61,861 bases of DNA, filler included, from Syncephalis fuscata S228 (GCA_025786725.1; 5 parts of 5 records of this genome joined end to end with filler, not necessarily neighbours in it); one strand, 5' to 3'. Positions 10,713-61,861 are shown, counted from the first letter of the whole stretch. Made by a program: numbers and translations. Notes: generated by a model from the sequence alone, not told the origin.

Positions 10713-13700
10713 ATGTCAACCAGCGCGCGTGGTGGTCGGAATCGACACAACGCGTTTCCTATCGGGTAGGCATACAGCTGGCTTGGCAAACTAATGTATA
10801 ACAGTGGATCTATTTATGCAATCTAGAACGAATCGTACTGCCGGCGGAGGTGGAAATACAGGCGGCGGCGGCCATAATAACAATAACAACAACAGCAATA
10901 ATAGCAACAACGCTGGTGGAGGCGGAAACAATATGAATAAATCAAAATGGCACTCACAAGGGCCAAGCTCACCTGTCGATCGTTCAATGCAAAGTATGAT
11001 TTATAAATGATTAATATAACTAGCAAGAATTATAATAATAACAGAATAATTAATTTGATTTAATTTGATTTATTTAGACAAAGACAAAGACACGTATATG
11101 ATGCACCAGCATGATCGTGCTCTATTTCTTTTAATGCATTTAGTGGTAGGCTGTTAATATAGAAATTGTGACCATGCTTTAACCAGCTTATTCATTGCCT
11201 TGGCAGGGAACACGCGTAAAAGTGACTGTGAAAGGAGGCACTCAGTATGAGGGTCTTTTCCACGCGGCAGCCACCGAGAGTGAATTGGGCGTTGTTTTGA
11301 AAATGGCTCGTCAATTGCCGGGTAGTAAAACAAAGTCTAACGGGACAGCTAGCGATGAAGCGGATACAGACGCTAATAGCAATTCGCCTGTTCATACATT
11401 AGTCATTCTATCGAAGGATCTATTACAGATGGATGCTGTTAATGTTGATTTTACTGTACCGCAAGCATCGGCTGTCCCACTGCCTGTTAAAACGCCCAAA
11501 TCACCGGCCAGCGATGGTAAATGACATAAATGCGTTTAAATAAGCTATAACTAATTATTTTTTTGGTAATTATAGGTTTCAAGACTGATACAGCGATTAG
11601 TGGCAAAAAAGGAGAAGTACGCGAACGTACATTACGTAAATGGGCCGACTATTCAGATGATGAAGAATTGCCTGAGTTGGGATATCCTTTTAGTTGTTTG
11701 TTTGATATATGCACTAATAATAAGTATTGTATATATGCAGTTAAGCTTTAACCTTTAATGGCCAATGAATACAGATTGGGGCACATCCGAAGACGCGCCA
11801 GCAACTCAGCCATGGGATCAATTTGAGGCTAACAAGAAATTGTTTGGTCTTAAATCAGATTATAATGAAGAGATTTACACTACAAAACTGGATCGTAATA
11901 AGCCAGATTATAAAGAACGAGAGAAAGTGGCTATTAAAATTGCTAATGAGATTATGCGTGTAGGTAGATAGTGTTTATTATTATGCCTTTTAACTGATTT
12001 TACTATTAGACAACAACGGATAATGCACATTTAGCCGAAGAGCGTGGTCAAATTGCTCCAGATGATAATATGGATGAGGAAGATCGGTTAGTAAAACGAT
12101 CATTTAATAATGGCTATGACTAATGATTAATGATTAATTCAATAACTTAATAATTTAGATATGGTGCTGTATTGCGTGCTGCTAAAGGTCCAGTACCCGG
12201 TGCACTTGGCGGTGGTAAAGGTAAATATCAGCCACCTCAATCACGGGCCAAAATGTTACTTCAACAACAACAACAGCAATCTACTACTCAAACAAGTGGA
12301 ACCAGTGCTACAAGTTCCACTCCATTGGTAGTAAAAGCAACTGCAACGAGTACAACTACTCAATCTATCACACAAACTACTAGTTCCCTGCCTAAACAGA
12401 CGCATCCACTGGTAGAGAAGGCAGTACAGAGGCCGCCAGCCAATGGAGCTGTTAGTCCTGTTGCTAGTTCCAGTGCAGCTGCATCGGCTAGTAATCGTAA
12501 ATTGACTTCATCTTATTTGGCCAAACTTAAGAATGATCTACTTAAAGGCATGCCTAAAATTGAAGAGTCGCTAAAAAAGGTCGAATCAGAAAAGAAACCG
12601 TCGACTACAACGGCCGAAGATGCTAGTGCATCCAAATCTCCACCATTGGATTCATTACCGCCAAAAATGCGTCCATTAGCACCAGCACCATCGGCTCAAT
12701 CTGGCTTACCAATCCGCAACAAAGGTAAATAGTAATTATAAATGATTTAATACTAATACTAACACTAACACTAATACTAATAATGACAGATGAACAAACG
12801 GGTGCTACCATTCCCAAAATACCTTTGGATTTATTACGTCCTGGTATGATGGCTCGTAGTACAAGTTCTACTGATGCTTTAGGTGGTGTAACACTGAGCT
12901 CAGTAGCAGCGGATGGAGACAAGTCTCAAAAGGCTCTATTGCGTACAGCATTCCTGGCCAGATTAGATAAGAAAATACACGCAGAAAGAAGTAATAAAAA
13001 GCCAATTGAAGCTCAAGTCGTTGGCACTTTCCGTAAATTTGTATCAACCGAAAAGGAACGTTTACAACAAAAAAAACAAGCGTTAATTCGTAAAGAAAAA
13101 GATTCTCGTATTGCAGAACTGGTTAAATTTGGTCAATCCTTTAAGGTAAGTAATTAATAGTTAATAATATTAATTTAACAATTATTAACTAATAATGTAT
13201 TATTTAATTTATTTGTTTATTTAGTTAAAATTACCTATGCCAGAAGATTTGGTGGATATTGTAACAAATGATCCAAAGAAAAAGCAGCAAATCTTGGAAG
13301 AAAAAGTACATGCTGAAAAGTCTATTTCGACATCAACTACTACTACTAGTATTACTAGTACTACTACAGTTAGTACTACTACTGCTACTACGGCAGAAAC
13401 GACTAAACCAACAGTCAGTGCTACATCATCGACTTCAGAACCAGCAACGAGTAAAACAGAAGATACAAAAACTGCAGTATCGCCACCCGATACTAAGCAA
13501 TCATCTGAGTCAACTGAAACAACATCAGCATCAACTACAACAGTAACTAAAAAAGAGGATACTGAAGTAGAGGAAAAGACCAGCTCTACTACTGCTACAG
13601 CTGAATCAAAAGACAAATCAGCAGTAGTAAAGACAGAGGAAAAGAAACCAGTACTTAGTGCATCTAAATTAAATGCCAATGCAAGTGAGTTTCGTCCCAA

Positions 13701-54483: not shown

Positions 54484-55387
54484 GTGGCAGATGCCTTTGA
54501 AGAAGGTTTAAGCTCAATGCAGCGAGTAAATTCTACTTGTAGCGTTATGATTAATAAACTAATAATATCACTATTAATAACCGTTTTAAAACAAAAAGTA
54601 GTCATGAACATTTTACATACCATTCTATCAAAATTACATCTAAAGTATGAACCGTAAATAAATTAAATACTGCTATCATAGCAAATATCAAGCGTATTGA
54701 TAAACTGCTAAATATTGCAATGAGTCCCTTAGTAGTAAGCTTGTTCCATTTAAATCCACAGCAGCGAGCATTGCTTCGATAAACAGTATAAACGAATGCA
54801 AGAAGAAATAGATCGGCTACAAATTCGGTGATAAATCGTATAAAAAGCACGACAGTAGGAAATTTTAAATAACATACTCCTGAGGGACCAAAATCATCTT
54901 CAGCTGTTTGCCAATAATACAAATAGACACCAATGCATGTTAGAACACAAAATACACCAGCTATAACCGGCTTTCTACAGCGATTATACACTAGATAAGT
55001 GTATTGTATCATAAAAACGCCACTGGTAATAGAGTTGATGCCGATATAAATAAGCCCAGCCTTCCCGATTAAATAGCATGATGGCCCATTTAAGAGTAAA
55101 AATGCTGAAAAGTTAAAGCCAATCACGGCAGCAGTACCGGTAAGACACGATATCGTACAGAATATAGCTGCAAATTTATGGCGGTTTGTATATAAGCACG
55201 GTAGGATACGAAATAAATTACGTAAAAATATCATAAACATCAATGCATTTATAACATTTGCTACAGCCAAGCTTTTGTAGCATGAGCGAGTACGCTCCAT
55301 ACTAGTATAGCATTTTTGCAAGTACTCATTTATATTCAAGTAAGGAGTAGCCGTGTCAGATGAAGGCATTTTGTTGGAATTGGTCAT
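54484..55387 (-). CDS. 7TM GPCR-like protein, class 2, array copy 1 (3' end truncated)
   Basis: Seven TM segments; Cys at the top of TM3 and in ECL2; phase-2 intron in the EW codon. Confidence 0.85.
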
Positions 55388-55751
55388 TAAATTGCTTGGG
55401 ATATTTAGTTGGTCGGTAAAGGTATATAATAACATTATATATTTAGATACATTAGCACAATTAGTTGGCGATTAATTACACTTTACGCCTTGGCTTATGT
55501 TTCAAAAAGAAAAGTTGCGTAAAAGGAAATGCAACCAAATACGGGGTACATGTTCGACCACTATACCATGATGTTTGAACCGAAACAACAAATGGCTTGA
55601 TTTGGCAAATAGCCTAGTGTTAAAAATATTTCTGTGTCACACTAATGTAGCAAAAATATTTTGGTTTTATATTATAGACATTCCGCTACCTTATTGCTAT
55701 TTTCCAATAATCCTGTAGCGCCAAAATGTTACACTGATATCGACACCATCT

Positions 55752-56507
55752 ATGGGATCCATTAATAGTAAATTATTATCAAATGGCAAAAAAGAAGGCC
55801 GTGTTTGGGTCACCACGCCTTCTCCAGACATGGAGCGCTCTGTGTCGTGCCCAGAAACAGTCTCAGTAGACAATACAGTTGAAGTAGATGAACCAAAGTC
55901 GTCATTATTTAAAAAAACCCGTTGGCAGTTTTGTCGCTTCAAAAAACCATTGTCAAAGCATTGGGTTGCTGCGCGTGCAAGCGACTACAACAACGATAGT
56001 CGCTCTCCATCTATTGTTCCAGCGGCTTATCAGGCAGAAGATTGGGCTTCAAGCAATCTATCTCCCAACAGATCATTTGCGAGCTCGGACGACAGCAGTA
56101 TTGGTAACGACCCTGAAATGGACGCATGGAGACCACACTCACATGAGCGCAGGTCTATGCAATTTGTCAGTGCCGATGACCTATTTCGGCCAAAAACTAA
56201 GCCGGTAAAGCGTCGCTCTTCCACAAGCACACTGAATGAAAGTCTAGGCCACGATGACCATCTGTCCATTATTCAAGAAAATACCTCAATAACACATTCG
56301 AAAATACCACTTGAGCGTTGCGAATTTGCATTGTTCAAACCCGAAACCGTTCTTCCAGCACAGCAAGTTAGTGTGCCGCAACTGGCCTCAGCATCTTTAT
56401 TCGGAGGTCCGCCTATTGTCACACCCAACATACAATGGCAAACTGCACACGCACCTGCGGATATGACACTTCCGAAGTTGTCCGAATCGCCTGGTATTTC
56501 AATGTAG
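55752..56507 (+). CDS. Ser-rich hypothetical protein, divergent partner gene, copy 1
   Basis: 251-aa ORF, repeated in each array unit. Confidence 0.65.
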   Translation: MGSINSKLLSNGKKEGRVWVTTPSPDMERSVSCPETVSVDNTVEVDEPKSSLFKKTRWQFCRFKKPLSKHWVAARASDYNNDSRSPSIVPAAYQAEDWASSNLSPNRSFASSDDSSIGNDPEMDAWRPHSHERRSMQFVSADDLFRPKTKPVKRRSSTSTLNESLGHDDHLSIIQENTSITHSKIPLERCEFALFKPETVLPAQQVSVPQLASASLFGGPPIVTPNIQWQTAHAPADMTLPKLSESPGISM

Positions 56508-57050
56508 GTCACAGGAGAAACTATTTGGTGAATAGCTAAGTTAGCGTGTTTAGTGCTTATGTTTCAGGTTTGCTTTTGCACTGCATGCTTGGTGGCGAGT
56601 ATATGGCGCCACTTCGACGACCTCGAACAATACTAGATGTATGTCTACGTGATTGCATCTGGATGCAGGTAGGTTAAATATGCTAAGCAAATTGTATATT
56701 CGCTACAACATGTGTAGAAAATGGCATTATCATTTCCAAAATGTAGAATTATTGGTAGCAGTTCCGTAAAATACTACATAGGGGCTGCTTGTACCCTCCC
56801 ACTAAATTGCCAAATTGTTTTCCAAAACTCACTTGATGGTAAGTATCAAAATAGATTATAAACGACGTTTCATGTAACTTTATGTAATAGATTTGCCAAT
56901 AGCCACTGATAGCATCGACTATATTCACCAACAAATGAACGTATTTTATTAAAAAAAAATTAATTTACCAATACACTTAACCGACTATCAATTTATACAG
57001 CATTGATGATAGCATGATTTACGTGCAGTGTGATTAAACTTGTACATTTA

Positions 57051-58067
57051 TTATCTTATGCGAAGGAGTTCAATAAAAGATGATACCCTGTTGATGGTAG
57101 TATTGTTTCGAGTAGTCAAATAAAGAGAAAACCTGGTTGGATTAGCACGACTGGCACATGTAGTTGTGGCAGATGCATCTGAAGAAAGTTCAAGCTCGAT
57201 GCAACGAGTAAATTCTACTTGTAGTGTTAGAACTAGCAACCTAATAGCATTACTATTAACAACTATGTTTAAAAATAGCAAAACTTTACTTTTTACTTAC
57301 CATTCTACCAAAACCATAACTGAGGTATAGTTTCCCAACAAATTAAAGCTTGTTATAATAGCAGATATCAAGCGTATTGACAAACTGCTAAATATTGCAA
57401 TGAGCCCCTTAATCGTAAGTTTTTTCCATTGAAATCCACGACAACGAGCAGTATTTCGATAAACAACATAAATGAATGCAAGAAGAAATAGATCGGCCAC
57501 AAATTCAACAATAAATCGTAGAAAAGGGACGATATTAGGAATAATTGCATGGCATACTCCTGATGAGCTACGATTATTTTTGATTAATGACCAATAATAA
57601 CAATAGACACCGATGCATGTTAAAACACCAAGTGCACCAACTATAACTGGTGTTTTACTGCGGTTATATACTAGGTAGATGTATTGCATCATAAAAACGC
57701 CACTAGTAATAGAATTGATAATGAGACAAACAAGTATTGCATTTTTGGCTAAATGGCACGATGAGTCGCTTAGAAGTAAAAAAACTGAGAATCTAAATCC
57801 AACCAAATCTACAATACCAGTAAGACACGATATCGTACAACATATGGCTGCAAGTTTATGACGACCAGTATGCAAGCATGGCATAATACGAAAAAGATTG
57901 CGTACAAATATCATAAACATCAATGTATATATAACAATTGATATAGCCAGTCTTTTATAGCATGAACGAGTATGTTCCATACTAGTATAGCATTTTTGGA
58001 AGTATTCAAACGCATTTAATCGATCTGTGGTGGTACTAAGTGGATGCATTTTGTTAAAACTGGCCAT
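57051..58067 (-). CDS. 7TM GPCR-like protein, class 2, array copy 2 (intron 57241-57300)
   Basis: GAATG|GTAAGT...TAG|GTTG splicing gives ...VEWLLVLTLQVEF...RIR*. Confidence 0.88.
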
Positions 58068-58429
58068 TAAAATTGTTTAAAATATTTAGTTGGTTGGCAA
58101 AGATATGCAATGGTATTATATATCCGGGTATATTAGCACACTTAGCTGATCATTAACTAAAGCTTTACAGATTGGTTCATGTTTCATAGACAATGCAGTA
58201 TAAGGGGCAAATACTCCAAATACGGAATGTATATCCGGCCAATACACTATGATGTATAAATTGAAACAATAAATGGCCTGATTTTGCACATTACCATTAT
58301 GTTAAAAATACTTGTGTCACATTATTGTAACATAAATGGCTCGGTTTTACACCATAGGCACGCTGTTATGCTGTTACCTTCTCAATAACCCTGTGCTACC
58401 AGCATGTTACATAAATACTGATACTATCT

Positions 58430-59180
58430 ATGAAATCTGTTAATAGTAAATTATTATCAAGTGGCAAGAAAGAGTGCCGTGTTTGGGTCATGTCCTTTCT
58501 AAACATGGGGGTGTTCTGTGTTTTGTCCAAAGATAGCTTTATTGATAATACAAATGAAGTAAATGAATCAAAGTTGTCTTTATTTAGAAAACCCCGTTAG
58601 CAATTTTATTGCTTCAAAAATCTATTAGCAAAGCATTGGGCTGCAGTGTGTGCAAGTGACTACAACAACAATAGTCGCTCTCCGTTCATTGTCCCAACTA
58701 ATAATCAAGCAGAAAATTAAGCCTCAAGCAACCTATTTTTTAAGAATTATTTGTGAGCTCAAACGACAGTAATATTTATAATGGGCCTAAGACAGATGCG
58801 TAAAAACCAAACTTATATAAGCGCAGGTCTATAAAATTTGTTAGTTTTTGGTTGAAATAAATTATTTGCATCAAACTAGTAAAGCGCCATTTTTCCATAA
58901 GCACACAAACAATGGTTTAAATTATGATTATTATTTGTTTATTATTCAAGAAAATACCTCAATAACACATTCGAAAATACCACTTGAGCGTTGCGAATTT
59001 GCACTGTTCAAACCTGAAACCGTTCTTCCAGCACAGCAAGTTAGTGTGCCGCAACTGGCCTCAGCATCTTTATTCGGAGGTCCGCCTATTGTCACACCCA
59101 ACATACAATGGCAAACTGCACACGCACCTGCGGATATGACACTTCCGAAGTTGTCCGAATCGCCTGGTATTTCAATGTAG
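58430..59180 (+). pseudogene. Partner gene copy 2: 5' part degenerate, 3' part nearly identical to copy 1
   Basis: Stops (for example TGG>TAG/TAA) and indels in 58430-58940; near identity resumes at 58941. Confidence 0.85.
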
Positions 59181-59722
59181 GTCACAGGAGAAACTATTTG
59201 GTGAATAGCTAAGTTAGCGTGTTTAGTGCTTATGTTTCAGGTTTGCTTTTGCACTGCATGCTTGGTGGCGAGTATATGGCGCCACTTCGACGACCTCGAA
59301 CAATACTAGATGTATGTCTACGTGATTGCATCTGGATGCAGGTAGGTTAAATATGCTAAGCAAATTGTATATTCGCTACAACATGTGTAGAAAATGGCAT
59401 TATCATTTCCAAAATGTAGAATTATTGGTAGCAGTTCCGTAAAATACTACATAGGGGCTGCTTGTATCCTCTCACTAAATTGCCAAATTGTTTTCCAAAA
59501 CTCACTTGATGGTAAGTATCAAAATAGATTATAAACGACGTTTCATGTAACTTTATGTAATAGATTTATTAATAGCCACTGATAGCATCGACTATATTCA
59601 CCAACAAATGAACGTATTTTATTAAAAAAAATTAATTTACCAATACACTTAACCGACTATCAATTTATACAGCATTGATGATAGCATGATTTACGTGCAG
59701 TGTGATTAAACTTGTACATTTA

Positions 59723-60739
59723 TTATCTTATGCGAAGGAGTTCAATAAAAGATGATACCCTGTTGATGGTAGTATTGTTTCGAGTAGTCAAATAAAGAGA
59801 AAACCTGGTTGGATTAGCACGACTGGCACATGTAGTTGTGGCAGATGCATCTGAAGAAAGTTCAAGCTCGATGCAACGAGTAAATTCTACTTGTAGTGTT
59901 AGAACTAGCAACCTAATAGCATTACTATTAACAACTATGTTTAAAAATAGCAAAACTTTACTTTTTACTTACCATTCTACCAAAACCATAACTGAGGTAT
60001 AATTTGCAAACAAATTAAAGCCTGTTATAATAGCGAATATCAAACGTATTGACAAATTAGTGAATATCGCAATAAGTCCTTTGATAGTAAGTTTGTTCCA
60101 TTGAAATCCACGACAACGAGCAGTATTTCGATAAACAACATAAATGAATGCAAAGGGAAATAGATCGATTACAAATTCTGTGATAAATCGTATAAAAGGG
60201 ACGATATTAGGAAAAAACGAATAGCATACTCCTCTGGGACTAAGTCCGCTTTTAATTGATGACCAATAATAAAAATAGACACCGGTGCATGTTAGAACAC
60301 CAAGTGTCCCAACTATAACTGGCGTTTTACAACGATTATATACTAGATAGGTGTATTGAATCATAAAAACGCCACTAGTAATGGAATTGATAACGATACC
60401 AATAAGCGCAGCCTTTCTGACTAAATAACATGATGGACCATTTGCAAGTAGAGATGTTGAGAATTTGAATCCAACTATATTTATAATACCAGTAAGACAC
60501 GATATCGTACAACATATGGCTGCAAGTTTATGACGACCAGTATACAAGCATGGCATAATACGAAAAAGATTGCGTATAAATATCATGAATATCAGCACAG
60601 TTATAAAAATTGATATAGTCGAGTTTTTGTAGCATGAACGAATGCGTTCCATACTAGTAGAACATTTTTGGAAGTGTTCAAATACATTTAATTGAGAAAT
60701 GGCGTTATCAAGTGGATGCATTCTGTTAAAACTGGCCAT
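59723..60739 (-). CDS. 7TM GPCR-like protein, class 2, array copy 3
   Basis: Same structure as copy 2, offset 2672 bp. Confidence 0.88.
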
Positions 60740-61158
60740 TAAAATTGTTTAAAATATTTAGTTGGTTGGCAAAGATATGCAATGGTATTATATATCCGGG
60801 TATATTAGCACGCTTAGCTGATCATTAACTAAAGCTTTACAGATTGGTTCATGTTTCATAGACAATGCAGTATAAGGGGCAAATACTCCAAATACGGAAT
60901 GTATATCCGGCCAATACACTATGATGCATAAATTGAAACAACACATAATTTAATTCGGCAAATAGCTACGATGTTAACAATATTTCTGTGTCACTTATTG
61001 TAACATAAATGGCTCGGTTTCACAGCACGGTATATTCGTTTTGCTTAGAACCTAAAGTCTCACTTTTGAGCTTTCACACCATAGGCATCCTGTTATCTTG
61101 TTACCTTTTTCCAATAATCCTGTAGCGCCAAAATGTTACACTGATATCGACACCATCT

Positions 61159-61861
61159 ATGGGATCCATTAATAGTAAATTATTATCAAATGGCAAAAAA
61201 GAAGGCCGTGTTTGGGTCACCACGCCTTCTCCAGACATGGAGCGCTCTGTGTCGTGCCCAGAAACAGTCTCAGTAGACAATACAGTTGAAGTAGATGAAC
61301 CAAAGTCGTCATTATTTAAAAAAACCCGTTGGCAGTTTTGTCGCTTCAAAAAACCATTGTCAAAGCATTGGGTTGCTGCGCGTGCAAGCGACTACAACAA
61401 CGATAGTCGCTCTCCATCTATTGTTCCAGCGGCTTATCAGGCAGAAGATTGGGCTTCAAGCAATCTATCTCCCAACAGATCATTTGCGAGCTCGGACGAC
61501 AGCAGTATTGGTAACGACCCTGAAATGGACGCATGGAGACCACACTCACATGAGCGCAGGTCTATGCAATTTGTCAGTGCCGATGACCTATTTCGGCCAA
61601 AAACTAAGCCGGTAAAGCGTCGCTCTTCCACAAGCACACTGAATGAAAGTCTAGGCCACGATGACCATCTGTCCATTATTCAAGAAAATACCTCAATAAC
61701 ACATTCGAAAATACCACTTGAGCGTTGCGAATTTGCATTGTTCAAACCCGAAACCGTTCTTCCAGCACAGCAAGTTAGTGTGCCGCAAACTGGCCTCAGC
61801 ATCTTTATTCGGAGGTCCGCCTATTGTCACACCCAACATACAATGGCAAACTGCACACGCA
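61159..61861 (+). CDS. Partner gene copy 3 (runs off window end)
   Basis: Essentially identical to 55752 onward; one extra A near 61788. Confidence 0.65.
   Translation, partial: MGSINSKLLSNGKKEGRVWVTTPSPDMERSVSCPETVSVDNTVEVDEPKSSLFKKTRWQFCRFKKPLSKHWVAARASDYNNDSRSPSIVPAAYQAEDWASSNLSPNRSFASSDDSSIGNDPEMDAWRPHSHERRSMQFVSADDLFRPKTKPVKRRSSTSTLNESLGHDDHLSIIQENTSITHSKIPLERCEFALFKPETVLPAQQVSVPQTGLSIFIRRSAYCHTQHTMANCTR

Follow-up and report, generated by a model that had tools for sequence, protein, structure and literature searches.

An old tandem array of genes resembling G-protein-coupled receptors in the mycoparasite Syncephalis fuscata, probably patched by recent gene conversion

The window analysed in this work is a stretch of 61,861 nucleotides composed of records from the Syncephalis fuscata genome (GCA_025786725.1), and its terminal part, positions 54484-61861, represents the complete, unplaced contig JAHLTZ010000323.1 of 7,378 bp. 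S. fuscata is a mycoparasite belonging to the order Zoopagales. The contig contains three direct repeat units, each comprising a seven-transmembrane (7TM) gene, R, on the minus strand, which is arranged head-to-head with a partner gene, P, on the plus strand. We suggest that this array probably originated from an old tandem duplication of a fast-evolving gene resembling G-protein-coupled receptors (GPCRs) together with a truncated bystander, and that it was recently patched by gene conversion. This explanation draws on the mosaic of identical and diverged blocks, on the clocks of divergence, on the truncation of P, on the fold of R and on the pattern of constraint acting on it, and it supposes that the identity of the blocks came from conversion rather than from assembly. 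A reading made previously from the sequence alone (the sequence-only reading) had described the locus as a tandem array of 7TM receptor-like genes of a mycoparasite, built of three units of ~2.67 kb. Both statements are confirmed: the families of direct repeats and a three-way alignment, in the register of which the unit borders were set, give a start-to-start spacing of 2680 and 2672 bp. A higher-order repeat of two units was rejected, as R1 is only ~75% identical to R3.

Comparison of the units reveals a mosaic of blocks with sharp borders. Between units 2 and 3, positions 56268-57329 differ from 58941-60001 by only 8 changes in 1,062 bp (7 transitions and 1 indel), and the promoter-proximal block 58052-58254 differs from 60724-60926 by a single change across 203 bp. 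The near-identical flanks previously reported for these two units are therefore real, and so is the near-identity of their promoters, although the end of the latter had been placed at 58269, ~15 bp too far. The stretch enclosed by the two blocks, 57330-58051, carries 127 differences, and exon 1 of R is 82% identical in units 2 and 3 as compared to 99-100% for the blocks on either side. The pairing of the units changes along the repeat. Units 1 and 3 form the identical pair over the 5' part of P, where their segments 55677-56275 and 61084-61682 show 9 differences in 599 bp, all within the first ~50 bp, while unit 2, decayed in this part, is 70-80% identical to them; this point was missed in the sequence-only reading. 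Downstream of ~56276 all three units agree, and the first part of the 56268-57329 block is also repeated at 61675-61861. Such near-identical tracts, sharply bordered and differing in pairing from tract to tract, are the pattern by which interlocus conversion is recognised, and the previous suggestion that conversion homogenises the frame of the array is supported here as the best reading of the mosaic.

Exon 1 itself was also affected. It includes a 92-bp tract, 57813-57904, where R2 and R3 differ once and where both synonymous and non-synonymous divergence between them is near 0. The site patterns in exon 1 are clustered (runs test p = 0.0005), and its longest pairwise-identical fragments exceed those obtained in permutations (p = 0.02-0.03), which indicates that conversion acted inside exon 1 too.

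The age of the units may be read from two clocks. For exon 1, Nei-Gojobori estimates of synonymous (dS) and non-synonymous (dN) divergence between R2 and R3 are 0.32 and 0.15 (dN/dS 0.48), and for the R1-R2 and R1-R3 pairs dS is 0.57-0.58, dN 0.22-0.24 and dN/dS 0.37-0.42. The decayed 5' part of P2, presumed to be neutral, shows 166 differing sites out of 591 and 9 indel columns relative to P3, which corresponds to a Jukes-Cantor distance of ~0.35. Since dS between R2 and R3 is about the same as the distance in this presumably neutral segment, exon 1 is old, not hypervariable. Units 2 and 3 have thus been separate for ~0.3-0.4 substitutions per neutral site, and it is their flanks that are anomalously similar. 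The hypervariability ascribed to exon 1 in the sequence-only reading did not withstand this comparison; what that reading overlooked is that the exon is heavily different at synonymous sites too (dS 0.32-0.58). The possibility of a young duplicate with a swapped exon is excluded: P3 is functional and full-length, so neither it nor the decayed P2 can have been copied recently from the other.

We suppose that a 2.67-kb segment including R (two exons) and the 5' two-thirds of P was duplicated in tandem. The resulting units are old, as indicated by dS of 0.3-0.6 in R exon 1 and by ~0.35 substitutions per site separating the 5' part of P2 from its counterparts. Later, patchy interlocus gene conversion, or unequal exchange, may have overwritten blocks of 92 bp to >1 kb, with the converted pair varying by block: units 2 and 3 around R, units 1 and 3 in the 5' part of P, and all three in its 3' part. 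Exon 1 would then appear hypervariable because its flanks were homogenised.

The near-coincidence of the diverged stretch with exon 1 may also be explained by a dedicated diversification of this exon, either through targeted hypermutation (retroelement-guided or similar to repeat-induced point mutation, RIP) or through a recent cassette replacement from diverged donors. We consider this very unlikely. The spectrum of changes in exon 1 is balanced, with a transition/transversion ratio of 2.3-4, GC>AT changes about as frequent as AT>GC, and no strand or base bias, and it does not differ from that of the unit 1 flanks, which diverged in the ordinary way. The decay of P2 is AT-biased (2.7-fold in favour of GC>AT), equally in transitions and transversions, and C>T changes occur at similar frequencies (0.35-0.39) whether the context is CA, CC, CG or CT, without preference for CpA or CpG. 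RIP is recognised by almost exclusive C>T/G>A transitions, CpA-preferring, in duplicated DNA; given the two spectra, RIP, CpG deamination and targeted hypermutation were all rejected. Neither a reverse transcriptase, nor a template repeat, nor an inverted repeat was found within 54484-61861, and a swapped exon in young duplicates is incompatible with the 28% difference between the 5' parts of P2 and P3 while P3 is functional. Among 1.84 billion protein representatives, none exceeds 50% identity to R1-R3. The exchange of cassettes, or any other dedicated mechanism, proposed in the sequence-only reading is therefore not upheld: nothing is unusual in the spectrum, and conversion also spared a pseudogene segment that evolves neutrally.

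To describe the constraint on R, exon 1 was divided into outer and inner sides according to the helix borders of an AlphaFold2 (AF2) model. Variable residues comprise 88/158 (56%) of the outer side and 25/98 (26%) of the inner side (Fisher p = 2.6e-6), and dN/dS equals 0.51-0.62 and 0.16-0.25, respectively, with dN on the inner side well below dS (Fisher p 2.6e-5 to 1.6e-8). The three outer loops, when pooled, give dN/dS of 0.42-0.66. The second extracellular loop (ECL2) alone reaches a pN/pS of 1.25-1.4, in the R1 pairs only and on ~13 synonymous sites, too few to count. In none of the grouped partitions does dN/dS reach 1, a comparison that has little power with three sequences. These data suggest that exon 1 is under purifying selection throughout, strong at the cytoplasmic side and weaker at the outer side. 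The diversified ligand face proposed earlier is thus retained as far as the enrichment of replacements at the outer face is concerned, while the positive selection implied by it is not found. The outer face shows relaxed, possibly diversifying, evolution under overall purifying selection, and the idea of a diversified ligand face is only suggestive.

As a control, we used K1-K3, another three-copy array of the R family in S. fuscata (locus L008). Its dS (0.33-0.53) and dN/dS (~0.4) are similar to those of R1-R3. However, outer and inner replacements make up 45% and 34%, without significant asymmetry (p = 0.14), and the flanks are only 39-57% identical as compared to 76-84% for exon 1. Therefore, the homogenised flanks and the outer-face bias are particular to the R1-R3 array.

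Several observations weigh against the conversion-based explanation and should be considered together with the rivals that they favour. The first of them concerns the limits of the diverged stretch, which fall at 57330 and 58051, within exon 1 and 29 and 16 nt from its ends. This position of the borders, as well as the location of the converted tract over the conserved cytoplasmic part, is not predicted by purely neutral conversion. Both would be expected if selection kept the outer faces distinct, so that conversions overwriting the outer parts of exon 1 were purged, leaving a lasting island of divergence, also at synonymous sites, while the promoter, the signalling side and exon 2 evolved in concert; this, the proposal of the sequence-only reading in a form that can be defended, is an addition to the explanation given above and not an alternative to it. 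In line with it, the only converted tract in the exon covers the inner half of the first transmembrane helix (TM1), the first intracellular loop (ICL1) and the inner half of TM2, outer replacements prevail and are less constrained in R1-R3, the sister array K1-K3 lacks this asymmetry, and the R1-R3 clade is placed on a very long stem (1.15 versus 0.24 substitutions per site for its sister clade, see below). We nevertheless hold this addition to be rather unlikely. Besides dN/dS remaining below 1 in each grouped partition, with ECL2 as the poorly sampled exception, the neutral decayed 5' segment of P2 escaped conversion equally and with an equally sharp border, which makes selection unnecessary; roughly half of the unit has stayed unconverted in any case; and three sequences are too few for site models.

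The other adverse observations concern assembly. A second version of the locus is present in contig JAHLTZ010000005.1 at ~399.5-404.3 kb (L009 5059-9869), to which positions 56992-61861 align at 97% identity. This version comprises two units only. It contains 72 indel columns, which break both of its R frames (R2' and R3'), including 7 single-base deletions in R3' alone, and the exon-2/intron flank of its first unit (L009 5233-5417) is a fine-scale hybrid of units 1 and 2, with deletions where both differ. In addition, 44 unique substitutions distinguish the two versions. The contig 5 version looks like a consensus made from the reads of two repeat copies or of two haplotypes, so collapse or haplotype mixing does occur at this locus, and the 99-100% identity of the flanks rests on long-read consensus.

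It may accordingly be argued that the flank identity or the unit order was created by consensus building or polishing of multi-copy reads, or by the mixing of haplotypes, and that the true copies differ evenly; the stand-alone contig of 7.4 kb, consisting of the repeat only and ending inside repeats, fits this explanation. We assign it a low probability. Both assembled versions agree in the main features, since exon 1 of the R2 and of the R3 type (97-100% each), the promoter block (92-99% between units), the identical 3' blocks of P and the decayed P2 all recur in contig 5. In JAHLTZ010000323.1, P1 and the frames of R1, R2 and R3 are unbroken. Coherent constraint at the codon level is seen in the diverged regions, which is not expected of a chimeric consensus, and homogenisation by polishing requires copies that are already >~90-95% alike. 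Still, because the locus is assembled in two conflicting ways, its repair is needed before any evolutionary claim is published.

The surroundings of the array in contig 5 suggest its origin. The order of genes there is R0, the array, full-length P, a Vac_ImportDeg gene and IF4E, where R0 is a paralogue 34% identical to R1-R3, located on the same strand and adjoining the array. R0 shares 56-58% identity with the orthologues found in S. plumigaleata and a related metagenome contig, and in both of them the R0 orthologue is arranged head-to-head with full-length P, with nothing between, which looks like the ancestral arrangement. In the maximum-likelihood tree, R1-R3 form the clade (R1,(R2,R3)) with 100/100 support and a stem of 1.15 substitutions per site, which is sister to the clade of R0 orthologues having a stem of 0.24. 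This position and the long stem indicate that the array genes are a fast-evolving offshoot of R0, which is either specific to the S. fuscata lineage or was lost from the others.

Each R gene consists of two exons separated by an intron of 48-50 nt with GT..AG borders, predicted from the sequence, and the genes are presumably expressed and spliced according to this model. The second exons of R2 and R3 are 100% identical. The open frames of exon 1 reported earlier were recovered, all three having 256 codons, together with every peptide string quoted from them. In each family member examined, exon 1 ends with ...(D/E)-TG|GTAAGT (57300-57302 and equivalent positions; L008 ~10748-10810), owing to which the open frame always reads tryptophan and then a stop. 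In annotated relatives, exon 2 starts with G and the tryptophan is kept; in R1-R3, the sole in-frame acceptor is predicted to give cysteine. An arrangement of variable first exons sharing a constant exon was rejected, as every copy of R possesses a promoter, an intron, an exon 2 and a stop codon of its own.

The deposited annotation of the contig contains only P1 (KAI9590818.1, 349 aa) and a partial P3, and R1-R3 are not called. They are therefore absent from protein databases, which explains why the word-index protein search with R2 gave no match. Database searches with R were made with exon 1, while exon 2 was translated and was scanned separately against Pfam. Pfam matched neither R1-R3 nor five relatives (E up to 10), and none of 54 family members (E up to 0.1); a profile search against the sequences of PDB returned chance matches only; exact look-up of the R2 and R3 exon 1 products in public assemblies found none on record; and a search for loci related to the array, in a contig collection of bacteria and archaea only, found none. 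In contrast, an exhaustive profile search with R revealed 57 representative clusters. In the 29 of these 57 that were looked up, all the named sources are Zoopagales (S. fuscata, S. plumigaleata, S. pseudoplumigaleata and Thamnocephalis sphaerospora), and the rest are metagenome proteins. R thus appears to represent a real gene family confined to Zoopagales and having neither a name nor a Pfam model. Further tandem clusters of this family are located in S. fuscata contigs 5 and 31, where the deposited gene calls seem to omit or split one copy in L008 and part of another in L007.

The AF2 model built from 54 sequences is confident, with a pLDDT of 87.5 and a pTM of 0.82. It predicts six helices and the start of TM7 in exon 1, with a beta-hairpin in ECL2, and thereby the seven-helix arrangement common to GPCRs and rhodopsins. 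Alignment with VIA-align gives the fungal pheromone receptor Ste2 (class D) as the best structure (7ad3_B, Z 14.1, 11% identity), followed at Z 12-14 by TAS2R14 (class T), class A receptors, Frizzled and microbial rhodopsins; a Z of ~14 lies within the range often attained by helical bundles. Of the top 50 Foldseek structures, nearly all are class A GPCRs, with weak E-values (5e-3 to 3e-2), and the ESM Atlas neighbours are uncharacterised fungal 7TM clusters with a TM-score of 0.69-0.74 by query. Besides the initiator Met, C104 and C172 are the sole invariant residues in the 54 aligned members, and both are placed outside, the former at the TM3 top and the latter within ECL2; these are the two cysteines whose retention was noticed earlier, and they presumably form a disulphide. 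The loops contain 10 K+R residues inside and 3 outside, which by the positive-inside rule is consistent with an N-out topology, as are the N-X-S/T sequons present in ECL2 and ECL3.

Assignment to class A GPCRs (Pfam 7tm_1) was rejected for R because of the absence of a profile match and of the DRY and NPxxY motifs in R1-R3: TM3 of R2 ends with QYIYLVYNR, and its predicted TM7 has no NPxxY. UniRef tags the relative P0002 with the PROSITE family-1 profile, a label that was not reproduced in our analysis. Membership in the STE2 family was rejected as well, since R matches neither Pfam STE2 nor any PDB sequence. R is GPCR-like in its predicted fold and topology, and we suppose that it acts as a receptor.

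The partner gene has a different status. The four-exon model of P1, derived from conservation with the metagenome contig, coincides with the deposited protein (P0062). Two orthologues, P0064 (522 aa) and P0066 (499 aa), as well as the parent P0065 from S. fuscata, extend ~180 residues beyond the end of P0062, whereas the homology of the array copies to the parent stops right after the DYIHQQM codons, with a chance stop ~15 nt further on. The duplicated segment included R and the 5' two-thirds of P, so all copies of P but the last were truncated at the breakpoint, and the P3 counterpart in contig 5 runs on into the full-length gene. Hence P1 and P2 are breakpoint-truncated fragments of a neighbouring methyltransferase-like gene and bystanders, a point missed in the sequence-only reading, and a functional pairing of receptor and "partner" is not supported. 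The decay of P2 spans the first ~160 codons, where Gly2 is lost and 3 in-frame stops (in the aligned pieces) and 2 frame changes occur.

The similarity of P to methyltransferases is weak. The parent P0065 matches Methyltransf_25 with E = 1.5e-4 and 22.8 bits, below the 27-bit cut-off, P0066 reaches 17 bits, and P0062 and P0064 show no match; the sub-threshold similarity lies in the C-terminal extension absent from P0062. At the expected motif I of the S-adenosylmethionine (SAM) loop (P0062 residues 262-290), the P sequences of S. fuscata read ILDVCLRDC, without glycines. By our own reading this string would occupy the motif-I position, and P may be a pseudo-enzyme. P0062 and P0064 start with MGxxNS, a possible signal for N-myristoylation. 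Apart from the sub-threshold Methyltransf_25, Pfam gave nothing usable for P or its single exons, and the word-index protein search with P exon 1 returned only the contig's own protein. An RNA gene downstream of the P exon 1 frame was rejected, as the conserved DNA there represents P exons 2-4; Rfam gave no match on either strand with E up to 1. The intergenic spacer between R and P (60935-61083) is ~55 bases longer in unit 3 than in units 1 and 2 and is the sole non-coding part that differs among all three units. The coordinates of the features are summarised in Table 1.

Table 1. Features of the R-P array in contig JAHLTZ010000323.1 (window positions) and of related loci (locus positions). 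Unit borders are derived from repeat spacing and the three-way alignment.
Feature	Position	Strand	Remarks
Unit 1	54484..57165		Left end cut by contig start
Unit 2	57166..59837
Unit 3	59838..61861		Right end cut by contig end
R1 exon 1	54621..55387	-	256 codons counting the split last codon; open frame; most diverged copy
R1 predicted intron	54571-54620	-	50 nt; GT..AG positions
R1 exon 2, partial	54484..54570	-	Runs off contig start; in-frame conservation with R2 exon 2
R2 exon 1	57301..58067	-	Open frame; recurs in contig 5 at 97-100%
R2 predicted intron	57253-57300	-	GT..AG
R2 exon 2	57051..57252	-	End of TM7 and 66-residue tail; stop 57051-57053
R3 exon 1	59973..60739	-	Recurs in contig 5 at 98-100%, there with 7 single-base deletions
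R3 predicted intron	59925-59972	-	GT..AG
R3 exon 2	59723..59924	-	Splice model
P1	55752..56952	+	Exons 55752-56503, 56554-56668, 56718-56838, 56891-56952; KAI9590818.1, 349 aa
P2 pseudogene	58430..59624	+	5' part to 58940 25-30% diverged; 3' part 99% identical to P1
P3 exon 1	61159..61861	+	Cut by contig end; essentially identical to P1
Homogenised block, units 2 and 3	56268..57329		P 3' part, spacer, R exon 2, intron, last 29 nt of exon 1; same as 58941-60001
Promoter-proximal homogenised block, units 2 and 3	58052..58254		Includes first 16 nt of R coding sequence; same as 60724-60926
Homogenised tract within exon 1, R2 and R3	57813..57904		92 bp; inner half of TM1, ICL1, inner half of TM2; 1 difference
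Block shared by units 1 and 3	55677..56275		Same as 61084-61682; unit 2 70-80% identical here
R0	L009 3772-4739	-	Orthologues L010 7284-8263, L001 4049-4801
Further R-family clusters	L008 8347-12577; L007 10001-12164, 16750-17732; L005 10001-10750, 17938-18644

The phenomenon described here is well known in kind, and the main new content is the uncharacterised receptor family together with its unannotated copies. Mosaic concerted evolution with islands of divergence occurs in the long- and middle-wavelength (L/M) opsins of primates, in RHD/RHCE, in the protocadherin clusters of teleosts and in MHC (major histocompatibility complex) genes, and models of interlocus gene conversion and concerted evolution have reportedly been developed by Teshima and Innan; the tandem arrays of Trypanosoma brucei may be a further case for comparison. 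Like these systems, the R array combines 99-100% identical blocks with sharp borders and blocks of 70-85% identity, the pairings differ, and the coding parts facing the ligand stay distinct. In contrast to them, the island in the R array has dN/dS <1, a neutral pseudogene segment is equally unconverted, and the comparison covers three copies from one genome. The array resembles the clusters with variable first exons in having a large variable first exon beside near-identical downstream sequence, but its copies are complete tandem genes with no shared constant exon.

The R family shares with the GPCR superfamily seven predicted helices (the last being completed by exon 2), the N-out orientation, the ECL2 beta-hairpin and the cysteines of TM3 and ECL2, but not a Pfam 7TM match, a sequence match to solved structures or, in R1-R3, the DRY and NPxxY motifs. 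Its neighbours in structure and in language-model features are DUF6533/DUF6534 from Basidiomycota and clusters from Ascomycota and Mucoromycota; however, no link to R was detected at the sequence level, and these families, being uncharacterised too, add no function.

The locus illustrates in detail how the homogenisation of flanks, rather than a fast exon, may produce the picture of a "hypervariable exon between identical flanks", and the decayed partner fragment within the R units serves as a built-in neutral clock that settles this point. It is doubtful that the array consists of host-sensing GPCR-like receptors in which selection preserves the outer faces while conversion unifies the promoter, the cytoplasmic side and the tail. 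If this were true, the array would parallel, in a fungus, the "concerted frame, diversified face" mode of evolution of protocadherins and MHC, and would have arisen in a young, very fast-evolving offshoot of the conserved R0. In any case, our analysis draws attention to a lineage-restricted GPCR-like family (57 representative clusters) that is tandemly expanded in S. fuscata, and if this mycoparasite senses its hosts through such receptors, the locus would be a reasonable first candidate for studies of expression and ligands.

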